Shown here: piece by piece, positions 3 through 30,205 of the stretch | Position numbering within the stretch: the stretch's first letter is position 1 | Layout: each line of letters opens with the position of its first letter | Assembly: GCA_026936335.1 (NCBI GenBank) | Contig: JAPMXV010000016.1 | Location: 186,001 to 250,000, forward strand | Origin: Mantamonas sphyraenae STR306 | Taxonomy: Eukaryota; Protista; CRuMs | Length of the DNA stretch: 64,000 bases | Reading direction: 5' to 3' | Made by a program: the position numbers and the translations under genes | Notes under the pieces: generated by a model | Databases searched by the model: none | What the model was told of the DNA's origin: nothing | Seen by the model: the letters and a program-made list of their open reading frames with translations, nothing else

Positions 3-3000
3 ACAAGCGGCAACGGAGGCGGCGGAAGCGGGTACGAGTCGAGCTACGCAGGAGTGGGCAGTGTGGGCAGTTCACGACCGTCGACGTCGCATCAACACCA
101 GCACAGCAGTTTGCGAGCTTATGCCAACCAGCACAGGGAGTTATTTGACGCTGGGAGCGACTTTCAGGCCTTCAAGCGCGCCACAGCGCAAAATGGCGCT
201 CAAAGCGGGTCGACGAACCGCAAGGGCAGCCGTGAGTCGAACGGCATCCGCGGAGACAACCTGTTTGCAGCGTCGTCGATGTATGCAGACGAGGATGGGT
301 CGCAACGGACGAGCAGTGCGCCTGTGGCCGTGTTTGAGCGACCGGCGACGGCAAGCGGACGGTTTGCGGCAAGCAAGCAGCTGCGAGACGAGGCGTGGCG
401 GGAGAGCAGCGAACGCTGGCGAGAGGACAAGGAGAGAGGCGAGGAGGAGGAACTGAGCCAAGAGATGGATCTGAATCAATTTGGAAGCACATCGCGTCGG
501 CAACAGGCGTCGGGGAGGCGTGCAGGGAGCGCAGGAAGCGCAGGAAGCGCGGGAAGCAGCGGAAGCGTGGGACGGCCACAGACATCGTCAGGACGGCATC
601 GAAGCTACGAAGAGAGCAGTGCAGGCTCATCACTGTTCTCTGCACCTTCGATTGAGTCGGTACAGGGACCAGGGTATGGTGATGACGAGGAGGCGGAGGA
701 CGACGAGTTTGTCGGCTCGCAGACCGCCTCATCCAGCCGAGGACCCATGCGGGCAAGCAGTGGGGGACGCACACGAACACGACCAAACACAGGCGATGCA
801 TCGTCAGGGACACGTCAACAACAACGAGGCGGACGAGAGGAGAGGCCGATTCGACCCGGGGTGGGTTCGGGGGGTGCCACATCGTGGGAGGAACTGTTGG
901 AACGGGAACTGCAGCAGGAAAACAAGAAACTGAAGAAGCGACGTCCCATCTCGGCACCGGTGAAGAAGAAGCCACCCACACCCAAGAGTGCGGGAGGGAG
1001 TGGGAAGGCTCAGCAGGATGCAGGTGCAGGGGAAGGTGGTGGGGGCACACCAAAGAGCATGACAGCCACGTTTGCTGGCAGCAGTAGGAACCATCAGCAA
1101 CAACAGCAGAGGATGGCGACGGAAGCACGGCGCAACAGTGTGTCAGAGGTGATGGATCGAAAGGCGAAGCGGCAGCAGAGGATGAAGGAGGAAGAGATGG
1201 AGCTGGAAGAGTTCAAGGCGTTGGAGTTGACACTGGAGATGATGGAGACGAGCAGGGACGAGTCTGGGTTGGATGTGGATTCGCTGATGGAGTCAACACG
1301 GCGCACGGGGATGGTGAACGAAGCGGTGGTGGATTTGGAGCGCACGGTGGAAGAAGTGACGCAGTCGGAGGCATGGGTGCAGTCGTTGACACCCAACACA
1401 AGTGCACACACACACGAGGTGGCAGATTCCAGTGGGGACGAGGGACAGGCAGAGGAGGACGAGGACGAGGAGGAAGCCATCGAGGTGATCCATCCCATAG
1501 GGTACCAGGACAGGGCTGCAGTGAGGAACAGCCACAACCAGCAACACGTGGACATGTGGACCAGACCGTCGCTGGCACGGGAGCACAAGCAGCAATGGGG
1601 CGACGACCACGAAGACTATGGCGATGTGGACAAGGACGTGGACGATGATGAGGTGCAGTACGGGGATGCCAGGGATGAGGATGAGGATGACATCGAGGAA
1701 AGGATGCATGATGATGAGGATGATGAAGATGATGACGACGATGAAGATGAACACACGGAGAGGCAGCGGTATGGCGGTTGGCAGGAGGATGATGCTGACG
1801 AGGAGGAGGAGGAGGAGGGACACGAAACCACCACCAAGGCCATCATGCTGGATGAGTTTGATGGCGTGGCCACACCACCACGCAGCAAGATTGTCTCGAA
1901 GCTGTTTGGCAAAGGGCAGCAGCAGGGAGGGTCAGCCCCGGCAGCGGCCATGGGAGACACGCGCACAGAGGCACAGAGAGGCATCAACAAGGCTACATTG
2001 GAGGCACAGCAGCTGCTGCAGGAGCAGCAGGCAAAGAAGCTCGCGCAGCAGGAGGAGGCCTTGAAGGGAAGGATGGAGAAGCTGCAGGTGGAGATTGCCA
2101 AGATGGACGAGGAGGGCAAGCGCATGCGCAAGATGCGCAAGGTGCTGAGTGCAGACATGGCGCAGCTGAAACGGGAAAAGGCAGAGGCAAAGGCACGTGA
2201 GGAGGCGTTGGAGAAGGCCAAGGCTGAGGTGGAAGACGAGAACGAAAGGCTGCGCAAGGAGAAACGCAGTCTGGAGAAGCGTCTTCGTGCGGCCAAGGAG
2301 CAACCGGACCGCAAGGCACGGGCAGAGATTGAGGAGTTGCAGAAGGAGGTGCGTGCGTTGCAGGCACAGCTGCACGAGGAGCAGCAAAAAGCCGGTTTGA
2401 CGCAGGAAAGGCTGAAGAGGCAGGTGGATTTGCTCACGCAGCGCAATCAGGAGCTGAGCCAGGAGGTGTATGTGTACGAACAGGAGCGTGTGAAGGCACA
2501 GTTTGGCAGTGGGCGAGGGGAGGAGGATACAAAGGGTAGCAAGGGAGAGGGGGAGACACAGGCGCTGGTGCAACAACAACGGAAGGGGAAGGGGAACGAT
2601 GGGAGACGCAGCAGCAGCGAACAGGATGTGCACGAAGCACGCATTGCACGGGACATGGGTGCATACGAAGCAGAGCTGGCCAAGGTAAACGAGGAACTGG
2701 CAAACAACCACGGTACGCCTTTGGGCAAGACGTTGGACGATGGCAACCACCGGATGGTGGACAGTGGCCTGGACATGGTGCGCTACGTGGACTCGGACGA
2801 GGAAGAGGAGGACGAGGAGGAAGAGGGCGATGCAGAGTCGTATCCGTACGGCGATGACGAAGAGGTGTTTGGGGACGGGGAGGAGGAGGAGGAGGAGGAG
2901 GATGAACGGGACGACATGTACAGTGACGACGACGGGGAGATGGTGGAGAAGGAGGGCAAGCGCGGGTATGATGATGATGATGAGGAAGAAGAGGAGGACG

Positions 3001-3854
3001 AGGGCGAAGAGGAGGAGGAAGAGGAAGAGGAGGGTGAGGATGAGGACGAGGATGAGCAGGATGACGAGGAGGAGGAAGCGTCGGGAGTGCTGTTTCTGGA
3101 CATGGACAAGACGGGGGAAACGAAAAGCAACAGCACACGCAGCAGCCGAGAAGACGGGCAGCAGCAGGTGAGGGATGGGGCAAAGGGAGTTGCATCGGAG
3201 GACTTGACGGATGAGGATCTGGAAGCGATTCAAGAGGCGTTTATGGAGATGCGACTGAGCCCCGACGACGACAGCGTGGAGGCGCCGCTAAAGGTAATTG
3301 AGCACAGGGATGGCAAGGTGGAGAAGCGGTACCGGAACAAGCGCAAGGTGGTGGTGTTTGGCAACGGGACAAAGAAGGAAACGCAGCACGGGAACACGGC
3401 GGTGTACTTTGACAACGGAGACATCAAGAAGACGTCTGTGGACGGTGTGGTGGTGTACCGGTATGCCGAGACAGAGACGACACACACGACATACACGGAT
3501 GGGTTGGAGGTGTTTGTGTTTGCCAACCAGCAGACGGAGAAACACTACCCGGACGGGAGCAAGGAGATCTTCTTCCCAGACAAGACGGTGAAGCGCATCT
3601 ACAGCGACGGACTGGAGGAGAGTGTGTTTCCCGACGGAACGATGCAGCGTGTGAGCACGGATGGGGAGCGGGTGGTGTTGTTTCCCAACGGCCAGAAGGA
3701 ACTGCATCACAAGAATGGCGTCAAGCAGCGGGTGTATCCGGATGGCACCACCAAGACCGTGTACCCCGACGGACAGCAGGAGACGCGATACAGCAACGGA
3801 CGTGTGCGCATCAAGGACGCCCAGGGAACGGTGATTGTCGATGAGTTCCGTTGA
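3..3854 (+). CDS. CENPJ: SAS-4/CENP-J (CPAP) centriole assembly protein, 5' truncated by window edge
   Basis: Frame is open from position 3 (the track start at 54 is a GTG). PN2-3-like EEMELEEFKALE, central coiled coil, long acidic tracts, and C-terminal TCP10/G-box repeats (VYFDNGDIKKT, YPDGSKEIFFPD, ETRYSNGRVRIKD). Confidence 0.9.
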   Translation, partial: TSGNGGGGSGYESSYAGVGSVGSSRPSTSHQHQHSSLRAYANQHRELFDAGSDFQAFKRATAQNGAQSGSTNRKGSRESNGIRGDNLFAASSMYADEDGSQRTSSAPVAVFERPATASGRFAASKQLRDEAWRESSERWREDKERGEEEELSQEMDLNQFGSTSRRQQASGRRAGSAGSAGSAGSSGSVGRPQTSSGRHRSYEESSAGSSLFSAPSIESVQGPGYGDDEEAEDDEFVGSQTASSSRGPMRASSGGRTRTRPNTGDASSGTRQQQRGGREERPIRPGVGSGGATSWEELLERELQQENKKLKKRRPISAPVKKKPPTPKSAGGSGKAQQDAGAGEGGGGTPKSMTATFAGSSRNHQQQQQRMATEARRNSVSEVMDRKAKRQQRMKEEEMELEEFKALELTLEMMETSRDESGLDVDSLMESTRRTGMVNEAVVDLERTVEEVTQSEAWVQSLTPNTSAHTHEVADSSGDEGQAEEDEDEEEAIEVIHPIGYQDRAAVRNSHNQQHVDMWTRPSLAREHKQQWGDDHEDYGDVDKDVDDDEVQYGDARDEDEDDIEERMHDDEDDEDDDDDEDEHTERQRYGGWQEDDADEEEEEEGHETTTKAIMLDEFDGVATPPRSKIVSKLFGKGQQQGGSAPAAAMGDTRTEAQRGINKATLEAQQLLQEQQAKKLAQQEEALKGRMEKLQVEIAKMDEEGKRMRKMRKVLSADMAQLKREKAEAKAREEALEKAKAEVEDENERLRKEKRSLEKRLRAAKEQPDRKARAEIEELQKEVRALQAQLHEEQQKAGLTQERLKRQVDLLTQRNQELSQEVYVYEQERVKAQFGSGRGEEDTKGSKGEGETQALVQQQRKGKGNDGRRSSSEQDVHEARIARDMGAYEAELAKVNEELANNHGTPLGKTLDDGNHRMVDSGLDMVRYVDSDEEEEDEEEEGDAESYPYGDDEEVFGDGEEEEEEEDERDDMYSDDDGEMVEKEGKRGYDDDDEEEEEDEGEEEEEEEEEGEDEDEDEQDDEEEEASGVLFLDMDKTGETKSNSTRSSREDGQQQVRDGAKGVASEDLTDEDLEAIQEAFMEMRLSPDDDSVEAPLKVIEHRDGKVEKRYRNKRKVVVFGNGTKKETQHGNTAVYFDNGDIKKTSVDGVVVYRYAETETTHTTYTDGLEVFVFANQQTEKHYPDGSKEIFFPDKTVKRIYSDGLEESVFPDGTMQRVSTDGERVVLFPNGQKELHHKNGVKQRVYPDGTTKTVYPDGQQETRYSNGRVRIKDAQGTVIVDEFR

Positions 3855-3982
3855 CACGGGCCTGGCAACATCCAGTGATGACTGTGTGTGAGTGGGTGTG
3901 AGTGGAAATGAACTGGGTCGTGGTCATGTATTGTACACAGCGCATGGTGGTGCAAGACAACAGCAAAGCCGTTTTCGACGCG

Positions 3983-5168
3983 ATGAGTCGCCCGGAGTAT
4001 CAGAAACCGCCGGAATTTGTGAGTGGATGGAATGGAGAGGTGTGGTGTGGTGGAAAGGGAGAGACACTGACACGGGATGGGACAGTTTTACGACCGAAAG
4101 GAGGCCGAGTCGTACCAAACCTCGTACGTGCGGGGGGGCGGACTGCAGAGGCGTGTGTGGGTAAATGGAAACCCACAGGACGGGAGGTGGGGACTGACAC
4201 AGAGTGGCACACAATACACATGGACAGGACGCGGTACCGTGAGATCCAGCGGAAGATGACGGAGCGTGCGTTGCATTTGCTGAATCTGCAAACGGACGGA
4301 CCGGCGCTGATTCTGGACGTGGGCTGCGGCACGGGATTCAGCGGCGATGTGATTACAGAAATGGGTCACTATTGGATGGGTGTGGACATTTCCAAGGACA
4401 TGCTGGGTAAGGGGAAGGGTAGGAAGGGGAGGAAAACGAGTGTGCGTGGGTGAACTTGAGAGCTGACACACACACACACACACAACCACCGCAGACGTGG
4501 CAAAGGAACGTGAAGTGTCTGGAGACGTGACGTTGACGGACATGGGCATGGGCATGCACTTCCGTGCGGGCATGTTTGACGGAGTGGTGTCTGTGAGTGC
4601 GCTGCAGTGGCTGTGCAACGCAGACAAGAAGGTCAACATCCCTCGCAAGCGTCTCAATCGCTTCTTTGATTCCCTGTACAAATGCATGTGCTCCGGCACC
4701 CGCGCTGTGTTCCAATTCTATCCGGACAGCGCCGAACAAATCGAACTGATTACCAGCTGTGCCACGCGCAACGGGTTCAACGCAGGCCTGGTCATCGACT
4801 ACCCCAACAGCACACGCGCAAAGAAGATGTTCCTTGTCCTGTCTGCAGGGCGACCCAACCACGAGTTTACCCTCCCTCGAGGCCTGGAAAACGGCGAGGA
4901 CCAATCGACGGTGCAAATGTACGGCCAGGATGAAGGGTCGTCGTCATCGTCGTCATCGTCGTCAGCACGTCGCACCATCCAATCGGGCAGTGGTGGGGCA
5001 TCGGAGGATCTGGGCAAGAAGCGGAACCGGCGCAAGAAGGACGGTTCGGACCGGGATTTCAAGTCGCGGGACTGGGTGTTGGCCAAGAAGGACAGGCAGC
5101 GAAAGCAGGGAAAGAGGGTCAAACGAGACAGCAAGTACACTGCCAGGAAGCGCAAGGACAAGTTCTGA
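3983..5168 (+). CDS. BUD23: 18S rRNA m7G methyltransferase BUD23/WBSCR22; exons 3983-4018, 4086-4123, 4228-4406, 4495-5168
   Basis: Spliced MSRPEYQKPPEF-FYDRKEA; SAM motif ILDVGCGTGFSG; SVSALQWLCNA; C-terminal SKYTARKRK. Three in-phase GT-AG introns with CTGAC branch motifs. Confidence 0.95.
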
Positions 5169-5288: not shown

Positions 5289-7276
5289 TCACAGCTCATC
5301 CTTGTCATGTGCTGGCTTGCCCTGCTCCTGCGTGTGGGCCTGGGCCTGCTCTTTCTCCTGCTGGGGCTTGGACACGGGAGGCACAGCACCGACGTTGGGG
5401 TTGGGTGTGCCCTTGGGATCATCAGGGCCCCATGGGGTGTACCATTTGTCCATACCCTGTGTGTTGAGTGGGTACGTGTCTGCAAACAGCTCCTTGGCGA
5501 GACGGAACTTTGCGTTGAGTTTGTTGAGAAGGAGGGTCTTCTTGGACTCTGCTCGGATGGTCAACACCTTGCGTTGGTTCTCCGTCACCTCTGGAGACAT
5601 GATGTAATCCAGATCGAGTTGGATGCTGGAGTTCTGGGCCTGCAGCTGGTGGTTCGCCAGGTTGAAGATGGATCGCAGCACCTTGCGCTCATTGGCGGGC
5701 GACAGGACCTTTTTGTGGGCCTTTCCCACCTGTCCCTCACTCATGAACTTGGCGTAGTCGGCCTTGTTCATGTGCATGATGCGGAGGAACTGTACGAGGC
5801 GTGTGGAGAAGCGCACGCGGTTCATGCGGAAGTACACCCGATCGGTGGGGAAGCCCAGACGGGCAAGGATCTCCGCCTTCTCACGGTACAGACGCAGCTT
5901 GGGAGAGACACCCGGAAGGACGAGGTGGTATGTGTCATCGTCAAAGTTGGGCATGGCCAGGTTGAAGCGACGCAACAGTTCGCCGTGTGCAGAGACACCC
6001 AGGTTGACGGTAACCTCATCGCCAGCGGCCATGGGATGCGCTGCCGTGTACTCTGCATCCTTGTCCAGTGTCCAGGCGTTGGGTTGCGGGGCAAAGTCGT
6101 GGAAAAGCAGGTCCATGACGGGGATCAACACCGTCTCTTGGTTGTTTGCCCCAACACCCACGTCGCGTGCAAACGCACGTGCATCGGCCACATTGAAGGC
6201 CCATCGGAATGCACTCAAGCTGTGCGCTCCGTCAAAGTCAAACTGATCCAGCTTGGACTGCACAGCCTTGTTCTGCTTGAACCACACGTTGTACGCCTCC
6301 TCCTGCTGCTGGTGCCGTCCCACCATCGATGCACCAGAATCATCTGTGTGGTGGTCCATTGTGAGTGGGTGGGGATGGGTGTGGTTGTGGTTTATGTGCG
6401 TGTTGGTGTGTGAGAGGGAGGAGCGGGGGGAGGGGGGACGCGAGAACCTTCCAGCACCACCCGCTGTCTGCCACACGACGACTTACCCAGGGTATACAGC
6501 GAATCCACAAGCTCCATCTCCTGCACTGTCCATGTGTCCACCTGCAGGCGCTTGTCAGCCTTGAGCATCTTGATCCAGGGGGCAAACTCCGATTGGCTGC
6601 GGGCGGCGTGGTGTCAGTGTTAGGTTCCTTGTCTGGGAAAGCACACACACACACACACACACACATGTGGATGATGGGGAAGGGAGAGCAAGAGAAAATG
6701 CACCACGTACGGGTTGGCAGCCTCAAGGAACAGCCACAGGGCGACGGTGTCGGTGGCCGAAAGCTTTCCACCGCGCACAGGCATGCCCGCAAGCATCTCC
6801 TGCAGCAGCGGGTTCATGCTCAGCACACGGAACGAGGTGATGAACATCCTTTAACAAGGGAGGAGTGAAACACAGTGTGTGTGTGGGGGGGGGGGTGGGG
6901 GGAAGGAGGTACAGTGGGTGCACACGGGGGTCGAGGGAGGGGGTTGGTGTTAGCAGAGAGAGGAGAGAGAGGGGAAACGAAACGAAACGAGTCCGCAAGG
7001 GCCAAGCACTCACTTGTCCGGAACAAGAGCAAACTTGGTGCCGGTAGCAATGGGTTGGGTGGCCACAAAGGTGAAACCGTGGCGCTTGTGCATGCGCAGA
7101 TCGAGTGCGTCACCCTTCCAACCACGGGCGGTGGCCCACTGCTTCAGGTCGGTCCACAGAGCCTGATCCTTGTCAGACAGGGGCTGCAGGTCACTGTTGG
7201 CATTGGCTGCATGACTGGGAGCACACACAACACAGAGTGTCACGAGAATGGTGATTGCTACCACGCTACGGTGCAT
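5289..7276 (-). CDS. SET-domain (Rubisco LSMT/SETD3-like) protein with signal peptide and C-terminal KDEL; exons 7276-7014, 6848-6711, 6596-6487, 6343-5289 (521 aa)
   Basis: In-phase splicing gives N-SET HGFTFVATQPIATG, SEFAPWIKML, FRWAFNVADARAF, LIPVMDLLFH, AGDEVTVNLG..HGELL and a Rubisco-substrate-binding-like region (ANERKVLRSI). N-terminus MHRSVVAITILVTLCVVCAPSHA; ends HDKDEL. Confidence 0.8.
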
Positions 7277-7380: not shown

Positions 7381-8367
7381 ATGTCCAAGCAGATGCATCT
7401 GCGCAAGAAGCAGTACAAAGAGCTGCAGGTGACGCTGGAGTCGGAGTGGAAGCAGGATGTGCGTGAGCGATGTTTGGCCAGGCTCAAGGAGGAACGGGAG
7501 GCGTTTACGGGACGATTACGACGTCTCCAGGAGAAAAAGACAGAGGAGGCACATGGAAACCCAGAAACAGGGTCATCGTCGTCATCCTCATCGTCGTCAG
7601 GGGCCAATGGCAAGCGTGACGCGGCTCGACGGCTGGCGGCAGGAATGGTCTCTCGGGAACTGCAGCGGTACAGGCAGGAAAAGGTGGATGCGTTGGAATT
7701 GGACGACCAAAACACAAGGGAGGATGGCAGGTGGCACAGTTACGAGGCGCCGGAAGGCAGCGACTTTGACTTTTTCACAGACGAGCTGCCGGAAGAGTGG
7801 GAGACACAGCACAAGGGTGATCAGCACACTTGGGATGACACATGGTTTGACAGGGCAGGCGGGGAGCAACAGGACGGGATGGGCGGGCATCATGATGATG
7901 ATGGCGATGATGAGGACGAGGAGGCATGGGACGAGGAGGTGGACTTGATGGTGTATGTGGAAAGGCAGATTGAGCGAGAGCTGGCGAAACGGGAACGGGA
8001 AATGCGCATGGCAATGCGGCGTCAACAACGGATGCACCAACGAGAGTACGAGGAGCTTGTGGAGTTTGAAGAGGAATCATTGTTGGACCTTGTGTTGGAG
8101 TACTCTGACATTCCGTGTCCGCTGTGCTGGGAGCACGAGCTGGCCAAGACCAAGGATGTGAATCCAGTGATGGTGTGCGAGTGTGGCTTCAAACTGGACA
8201 CCAAAGACGACTTTGTGACGTTTGACATGCTGAGGCAGCGACTGGAGGAGTTGTATGATGAACACAGTACTCGCTGTGACCACGAGCCCCAGTACGAACT
8301 TCAGGACCAGGGGTTGATACTGTACATGAGTTGTGGCGAATGCGACACCCTGGATGTGGTGGTCTGA
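7381..8367 (+). CDS. RPAIN: RPA-interacting protein (RIP/RPAIN)
   Basis: N-terminal WKQDVRERCLARLKEER, acidic middle, C-terminal zinc finger CPLC..CECG..H..C..CGECDTLDVV. Confidence 0.85.
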   Translation: MSKQMHLRKKQYKELQVTLESEWKQDVRERCLARLKEEREAFTGRLRRLQEKKTEEAHGNPETGSSSSSSSSSGANGKRDAARRLAAGMVSRELQRYRQEKVDALELDDQNTREDGRWHSYEAPEGSDFDFFTDELPEEWETQHKGDQHTWDDTWFDRAGGEQQDGMGGHHDDDGDDEDEEAWDEEVDLMVYVERQIERELAKREREMRMAMRRQQRMHQREYEELVEFEEESLLDLVLEYSDIPCPLCWEHELAKTKDVNPVMVCECGFKLDTKDDFVTFDMLRQRLEELYDEHSTRCDHEPQYELQDQGLILYMSCGECDTLDVVV

Positions 8368-29386: not shown

Positions 29387-30205
29387 ATGACACGTTGCAC
29401 TTTTCTCATGATTCTGCTGCTGAGCGCAGGTCTGTTGGCACACGCAATGATCCCCGGACGGGTGGCGGTGGGCGAGTCCGAGCCTGAGGAGGAGTCGGAC
29501 GGGACGGAAGAAGTGGGCTTTGAGCCGCCGACGCCCGGCCAGGAAGGTGAGGACGTCATCGAGGGCACAGAGGGGGCGGAAACCACACAAAGCGGCGGTG
29601 CCAAGGACACAAAGACGACACAAGACACTGCAGACACGCAAAAGACAGGCGACAACGCACCTGCGACGGGCAAGGAGGCAGGCATGGAAAACAAGGAGGG
29701 ACAGGAAGACCAGGAGGAAGATTCTCTGGGTTCGATGCTTGGGGATCTGTTCCGCGAGCTGGGCAAGGAAGTGAGCAAGACAGTGGAGGAGGGTGGCATC
29801 AAGATTTCCATGCATGGCCACTACTGTGGACCGGGGCATGGGGATGTGAACTATGTGCAGGAGCCTGTGGACGTCATCGACGCCGCCTGCAAGGCCCACG
29901 ACTACTGCTACGAGTATGGCCATTACCAGGATTGCTACTGTGACGCAAAGCTGGTGAGTGACATCGACAAGGCTCTGAAGGCGCCCAGTGTGCGTGGCAA
30001 ACTGAGCCAGGAGGCCAAGCAAGCTGGCACGGCCATTCGCTCCTGGTTTGCCCTGGCCGGATGCTCATGTCTGGATGCACAAACGGGCAAGCGTGTCGAG
30101 CAGCAGGCGTATGATAGGGACAACCTCGTCAGCTGTTCCGACCCGGTGGCCTTCAAGGCGTTGCACACGGGCAACATGGATGGTGTGGACAAAGATGAAC
30201 TTTAA
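29387..30205 (+). CDS. Secretory-type phospholipase A2 with acidic linker and C-terminal KDEL
   Basis: Signal peptide; Ca-loop HGHYCGPG; catalytic DAACKAHDYCY; CDAKL; ends DKDEL. Confidence 0.88.
   Translation: MTRCTFLMILLLSAGLLAHAMIPGRVAVGESEPEEESDGTEEVGFEPPTPGQEGEDVIEGTEGAETTQSGGAKDTKTTQDTADTQKTGDNAPATGKEAGMENKEGQEDQEEDSLGSMLGDLFRELGKEVSKTVEEGGIKISMHGHYCGPGHGDVNYVQEPVDVIDAACKAHDYCYEYGHYQDCYCDAKLVSDIDKALKAPSVRGKLSQEAKQAGTAIRSWFALAGCSCLDAQTGKRVEQQAYDRDNLVSCSDPVAFKALHTGNMDGVDKDEL

Follow-up and report, generated by a model that had tools for sequence, protein, structure and literature searches.

The region analysed is a 64,000-nucleotide stretch of the Mantamonas sphyraenae STR306 genome (GenBank assembly GCA_026936335.1, contig JAPMXV010000016.1, positions 186,001 to 250,000), referred to here as the window. 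At positions 5289-7276 its minus strand carries a four-exon gene for a protein with an LSMT/SETD3-type SET fold and two predicted endoplasmic reticulum (ER) targeting signals, which we call ER-SET. A BUD23/WBSCR22-like methyltransferase gene (window 3902-5168, plus strand) converges on the ER-SET gene across a 120-bp gap; a functional link between the two was considered and rejected, as the neighbour has a different fold. Beyond it lies a CPAP/Tcp10-domain gene (window 54-3854, plus strand). On the other side, an RPAIN-like gene (window 7381-8367, plus strand) diverges from the ER-SET gene, and the 104-bp spacer between them, rich in CA repeats, is a possible bidirectional promoter.

The coding sequence of ER-SET, summed over its four exons, comes to 1566 nt, comprising 521 codons and a TGA stop. 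Exon 1 (7014..7276, minus strand as for all features of this gene; 263 nt) encodes residues 1-87 plus 2 nt, and takes in the signal peptide, the N-terminal helix and SET motif I. Exon 2 (6711..6848, 138 nt) encodes helices of the iSET insertion, which continues through exon 3 (6487..6596, 110 nt), and exon 4 (5289..6343, 1055 nt) supplies the second half of the SET domain, the LSMT substrate-binding domain, a disordered linker, KDEL and the stop. All three introns are canonical GT-AG, with phases 2/2/1. Intron 1 (6849..7013; 165 nt, GTGAGT..AAG) meets a stop immediately past its donor, intron 2 (6597..6710; 114 nt, GTACGT..CAG) contains in-frame stops and branch-like CTAAC/CTGAC sites at -27/-21, and intron 3 (6344..6486; 143 nt, GTAAGT..CAG) shifts the frame, so that the gene must be spliced to be read. 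No in-frame ATG precedes the one at 7276, and four codons ahead of it there is an in-frame stop.

We searched for homologues exon by exon and used a public, transcript-derived protein of Mantamonas plastica, P0077, as a full-length proxy. An exhaustive HMMER search with exon 4 returned a single close match (E 1e-71), the remaining 75 being distant (23-46% identity); no close diatom match was present among these 76 representatives. The close match, the sole close relative found, is a protein of the M. plastica transcriptome whose cluster includes the full-length, 499-aa P0077. Two less sensitive approaches added little: a word-based search returned nothing for exon 4 and only P0077 itself for P0077, and a low-sensitivity profile search (A2) gave one additional distant match. 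The orthologue was found in one genus only, Mantamonas. The predicted exons match P0077 one by one and in order. Exon 1 aligns with residues 6-85 (29% identity, E 1e-8), exon 2 with residues 90-138 (local score 54, reached by 0 of 2000 shuffles), exon 3 with residues 141-171 (45% identity, E 1e-9), and exon 4 is 43% identical overall. Conservation peaks in the substrate-binding domain (52% and 60% over two segments, against 40-43% for the SET core), and the tails are otherwise unrelated apart from KDEL. The four in-phase exons and 521-aa product of the initial annotation are therefore well founded, and it is highly improbable that the gene is a model artefact or a decaying pseudogene: the AAG acceptor of intron 1 is of a less common type, but the frames are open, the phases agree and all four exons are collinear with the transcript-derived orthologue.

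The family assignment was evaluated at the level of both sequence and fold. A Rubisco LSMT substrate-binding domain (PF09273) spans 5532..5897 on the minus strand (E 7.4e-14; 52.9 bits against a cut-off of 21.6), and exon 4 matches SETD3 in the PDB at 3e-10. The Pfam SET profile PF00856 is matched by none of the exons and not by full-length P0077 either, and the SET assignment consequently draws on PDB sequence matches and on fold matches. A structure model of P0077 (pLDDT 86) matches SETD3 and LSMT over the whole mature chain, with a Foldseek E of 5.6e-24 and a TM score of 0.73 against SETD3, and a VIA Z of 27.9 and rmsd of 2.6 Å over 404 residues. A helical iSET insertion interrupts the SET domain, as indicated by the PDB matches and by the fold match of the P0077 model over residues 32-460. 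The exon 4 model (pLDDT 80.7) has the same order of secondary-structure elements as the P0077 model, with residues 300-350, in the tail, disordered. The models were built with family alignments, which ties the fold match to the sequence match, so they demonstrate compatibility with the fold rather than providing independent proof. With these qualifications, the LSMT/SETD3-type domain proposed earlier holds for the substrate-binding domain and the overall fold, and does not extend to a Pfam SET match. ER-SET shares with SETD3, Rubisco LSMT and SETD6 the arrangement of a SET domain, an iSET insertion and a C-terminal LSMT substrate-binding domain, and ER-SET and P0077 are about 20% identical to SETD3, with Z about 28 and rmsd 2.5-2.9 Å. 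Orthology to SETD3 itself was rejected, since another M. sphyraenae locus, C51, groups with SETD3 (SH-aLRT 98 and 94) and ER-SET falls outside.

Unlike those enzymes, which act in the cytosol, nucleus or plastid and keep the equivalents of SETD3 Asn278, His279 and Phe327 (PMC6400499), ER-SET lacks the residues of the S-adenosylmethionine (SAM) site and carries a signal peptide and a KDEL terminus. ER-SET opens with a brief basic n-region (MHR) and a hydrophobic core (Kyte-Doolittle mean 2.98 for the 11 residues beginning at position 8); S-H-A occupies positions 21-23. On hydropathy, residues 1-23 (7208..7276, minus strand) form a predicted cleavable signal peptide with cleavage after S-H-A; the cut may alternatively follow residue 24 or 26. 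Beyond this segment there is no transmembrane helix, as no 19-residue window exceeds 0.94 on the Kyte-Doolittle scale in any exon, and a membrane anchor was rejected on these grounds. The protein ends in HDKDEL-stop, with the KDEL (5292..5303, minus strand) at the tip of a disordered linker of about 50 residues, where it would be exposed to the KDEL receptor that the organism encodes.

Both signals recur in the M. plastica orthologue; the initial annotation had proposed that protist proteomes be searched for orthologues keeping the two. P0077 opens with a hydrophobic, signal-like segment, whose residues 1-21 have low pLDDT in the structure model, and ends in KDEL; a second protein prediction, P0001, also ends in KDEL. 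Judged by hydropathy, both orthologues thus combine a signal peptide with no transmembrane helix, as in soluble ER residents. Given that the linker preceding KDEL is only 20% identical between the two proteins and the KDEL itself is the same, the motif appears to have been selectively kept. A K/H/R-DEL ending is expected by chance at about 5e-5 from composition, and the claim that coincidence is unlikely is strengthened by conservation of both signals across two species. Each protein further contains an N-glycosylation sequon in roughly the same loop (at Asn408 in ER-SET), which may lend weak extra support to ER entry. Together, prediction and conservation support targeting of ER-SET to the ER. 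Plastid targeting was rejected because Mantamonas is a heterotrophic flagellate (PMC10492846). It is very unlikely that ER-SET instead cycles to the Golgi, is secreted or has a cytosolic isoform. The shorter prediction P0001, which lacks the N-terminus, could be taken to favour such a fate, but it opens with an unrelated low-complexity sequence resembling a retained intron, two other M. plastica transcript models give the full 499-aa protein, and the exact KDEL persists in both species despite the divergent tail.

The M. sphyraenae genome encodes the machinery expected to read such a signal. A KDEL receptor gene (ERD2, PF00810) is present, and three Hsp70-family open reading frames end in HDEL, KDEL and KEEL. 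In a genome-wide pattern scan, xDEL-stop sites numbered 21, compared with 10 for a control pattern; their carriers include Hsp90, calreticulin, PDI-like and glucosidase II beta-like proteins. At this ratio the xDEL pattern is noisy by itself, and so the case for the KDEL of ER-SET is built on a gene ending conserved in two species together with the signal peptide. The scan also brought up several other proteins. A GT41 (OGT/SPINDLY-type) glycosyltransferase ends in KDEL (G000:C70 near 73990, plus strand), which is unusual for a normally nucleocytoplasmic family. Within the window, a phospholipase A2-like protein ends in KDEL at 30191-30205 (plus strand; G000:C16:216191), its Pfam matches being weak and below cut-off. 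Further xDEL-ending frames encode a GT61 (EOGT-like) protein, a 2OG-Fe oxygenase and a protein with a weak Fringe-like match, and three others have no Pfam match in their last open frame. Separately, two cytosolic Hsp70 copies (G000:C37:56525-58354 and 78367-80196), with identical scores and C-termini, lie 22 kb apart and represent either a recent duplication or an assembly duplicate.

We then compared the cofactor site of ER-SET with that of SETD3, in which the cofactor is held by Arg75, Glu104, Phe106, Arg254, Asn278, His279, Tyr313, Ser325 and Phe327 (PMC6400499). Asn278, His279 and Phe327 are common to LSMT and SETD6, and Phe327 stacks against the adenine (PMC6400499). Column counts were made over 63 distant homologues. 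The second Gly of motif I (SETD3 Gly107) is replaced by Thr69 (7070..7072, all positions on the minus strand), and is Thr in M. plastica too. The NH motif (SETD3 Asn278-His279) has degenerated to Phe251-His252 (6099..6104) and to Phe-Ala in M. plastica, at a position where 58 of the 63 homologues have Asn. Leu285 (6000..6002) replaces the catalytic Tyr (SETD3 Tyr313); M. plastica also has Leu, and 56/63 homologues retain Tyr. Finally, Asn298-Leu299 (5958..5963) stands in place of Gly-Phe (SETD3 Gly326-Phe327), which is Asn-Val in M. plastica and otherwise close to invariant (Gly in 63/63 homologues, Phe in 62/63). The equivalents of Asn278, Tyr313, Gly326 and Phe327 are therefore lost in both species, the first three to the same new residue in each. 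The two species both retain 15 of the 27 family-conserved columns; the losses fall mainly around the SAM site, while residues of the scaffold persist. The equivalent of Arg254, which contacts the SAM carboxylate, is kept in both Mantamonas proteins, and that of His279 in M. sphyraenae only.

Both species have lost the Asn that binds SAM, the catalytic Tyr and the Phe that stacks against the adenine. Luminal methylation by ER-SET is therefore unlikely, and methyltransferase activity is very probably absent. The initial annotation had offered two functions; luminal protein methylation is accordingly unsupported for this protein, and a chaperone or substrate-binding role is the better option. Dead SET folds have a precedent in MLL5/KMT2E, which lacks key cofactor residues and is inactive (PMC5094779). 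That protein resembles ER-SET in being a SET fold stripped of cofactor residues, but it is found at chromatin in the nucleus and comes from a different SET subfamily, whereas ER-SET is LSMT-type and predicted to be ER-luminal.

Two other readings of the altered pocket were weighed. The pocket may have been remodelled for another ligand, such as a lipid, a glycan or a metabolite, making ER-SET a luminal sensor, a carrier or a different enzyme. The two species share the same new residues (Thr, Phe, Leu and Asn, and Phe at the Asn308 column of P0077), which is not a pattern of random decay and suggests selection on the altered pocket. However, one ancestral substitution followed by ordinary packing constraint would also explain the shared residues, and pseudo-enzymes often have an empty pocket filled by hydrophobic residues; we regard this reading as improbable. 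Somewhat less credible still is that ER-SET works as a methyltransferase in the ER lumen through a rewired cofactor pocket, in which case it would methylate Lys or His on secretory proteins using imported SAM. The retained Arg254 equivalents and the His279 equivalent of M. sphyraenae speak for it, as do precedents for luminal methylation. METTL9 has a signal peptide and carries ER N-glycans (PMC12313917), SLC39A7 bears methylhistidines in regions that face the ER (PMC13027442), and putative SAM transporters of the Golgi are described from plants (bioRxiv 2021.07.06.451061). Against this, none of the equivalents of Asn278, Tyr313, Gly326, Phe327 and the motif I Gly survives, and at several of these positions the new residue is bulkier. 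In SETD3, the N278A substitution alone takes kcat down about 800-fold, from 0.809 per min to 0.001 per min, and Y313F lowers it about 36-fold (PMC6400499). A scan of the M. sphyraenae genome for EamA domains gave 28 matches, among which no single candidate SAM importer could be distinguished.

The wider family was surveyed first within M. sphyraenae, whose genome has nine LSMT-type loci. Three paralogues besides ER-SET have signal-like starts, and none of them ends in an xDEL motif. In C54 (G000:C54:155239-156732, plus strand) the NH motif is NT and the catalytic Tyr is kept; in C37 (G000:C37:219995-221457, minus strand) NH is RQ and the Tyr is Phe. The third, C57 (G000:C57:11583-12854, minus strand), has intact NH, YG and GF motifs, and is on sequence the best candidate in this genome for an active secretory-pathway methyltransferase. 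A further locus, C27 (G000:C27:136514-138800, plus strand), encodes, within a single long open frame, a SET and a substrate-binding domain and, after them, ankyrin-like repeats; its catalytic Tyr is Val, and the status of its hydrophobic N-terminal stretch is uncertain. C8, C46 and C44 are without a signal-like start. In two quick trees ER-SET and P0077 pair at 99-100 and join C54 and C37 with SH-aLRT of 93 and 94, a grouping whose support is thus below 95 and which involves long branches. Within Mantamonas, a small subfamily of secretory SET proteins probably gave rise to ER-SET by gene duplication.

Secretory SET proteins appear to recur in protists. The protein P0026, from an ENA metagenome contig (L021, 238-1755), was called with too late a start, and its frame can be followed upstream for another 67 codons, which bring in a signal-like peptide; it has intact NH and Tyr and ends in SDEL, and its relative P0008 (MMETSP) ends in DDEL. 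A second, well-supported clade comprises P0047 (Phalansterium solitarium, Amoebozoa), P0039, P0020, P0005 and P0045, which open with a signal-like segment and carry Asp where the catalytic Tyr would be, with one member ending in KEEL. This is probably a second family of secretory pseudo-SETs, of likely amoebozoan origin. Another protein, P0016, ends in KTEL and has Arg for the Tyr. Neither the P0026/P0008 nor the Phalansterium clade groups with the Mantamonas protein, indicating that secretory targeting either has several origins or goes back too far for these trees to resolve. Where relatives come from algae with complex plastids, their signal peptides could be plastid signals.

The uniqueness that the initial annotation implied for a secretory SET protein is lessened by these signal-peptide and xDEL-bearing protist proteins, and by the predicted precedent of the diatom BacSETs. 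The BacSETs of Nemoto et al. 2020 reportedly carry ER signal peptides. Two reports tie them to silica wall formation (bioRxiv 2020.11.23.393678; PMC11151724). BacSETs are like ER-SET in being SET proteins linked to a secretory process, but they are diatom-specific and presumed active, whereas ER-SET belongs to Mantamonas and is probably inactive. METTL9 is a further parallel, as a protein methyltransferase that enters the ER through a signal peptide and has largely non-catalytic roles. Full-text literature searches, which covered few subscription journals, yielded no characterised ER-luminal SET protein, in agreement with the earlier statement that none was known.

These data allow us to propose that ER-SET is probably a catalytically dead LSMT/SETD3-fold resident of the ER lumen, binding clients or partners non-catalytically. 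Based on the conserved signals and established knowledge of the pathway, the signal peptide would take the protein through the translocon and be cleaved, and KDEL on its flexible tail would allow the KDEL receptor to retrieve it from the Golgi. As judged from the sequences of the two species, the two-lobed architecture of SET and substrate-binding domains has been kept and the SAM pocket lost. The most likely job of such a protein would be to bind other proteins in the cleft between the two domains without modifying them. The Arg254 equivalent kept in both species, and that of His279 in M. sphyraenae, would count against this proposal. ER-SET may act as a client-specific folding or retention factor, or it may be a partner without catalysis of its own that anchors in the ER those signal-peptide SET paralogues which have no KDEL. 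CRTAP, glucosidase II beta and PDI serve catalytic partners in the ER, and a partner-subunit role for ER-SET would resemble theirs, an analogy that we offer as speculation. To our knowledge LSMT and SETD3 are not obligate heterodimers, which counts against the partner-subunit option.

A broader and more tentative possibility, which we rate as rather unlikely, is that protists have a secretory-pathway methylation system made up of signal-peptide LSMT-type SET enzymes, such as C57 and the SDEL/DDEL clade, and dead KDEL-bearing partners. If so, CRuMs, Amoebozoa and other lineages would possess the system and animals and fungi would have lost it, and the dead partners would retain or activate the secretory SET enzymes or feed clients to them.

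ER-SET thus presents a known fold in a new setting, conserved between two species and, as far as we could find, undescribed in the literature. SET proteins are usually regarded as cytosolic, nuclear or organellar enzymes. A conserved dead copy ending in KDEL suggests that a lineage branching close to the base of Amorphea has brought the SET fold into the ER to serve there in a role other than catalysis. Whether Lys and His are methylated in the ER lumen is a question already raised by METTL9 and by diatom wall proteins, and the signal-peptide paralogues of M. sphyraenae, together with the intact xDEL-bearing relatives, would provide concrete candidates for that activity.
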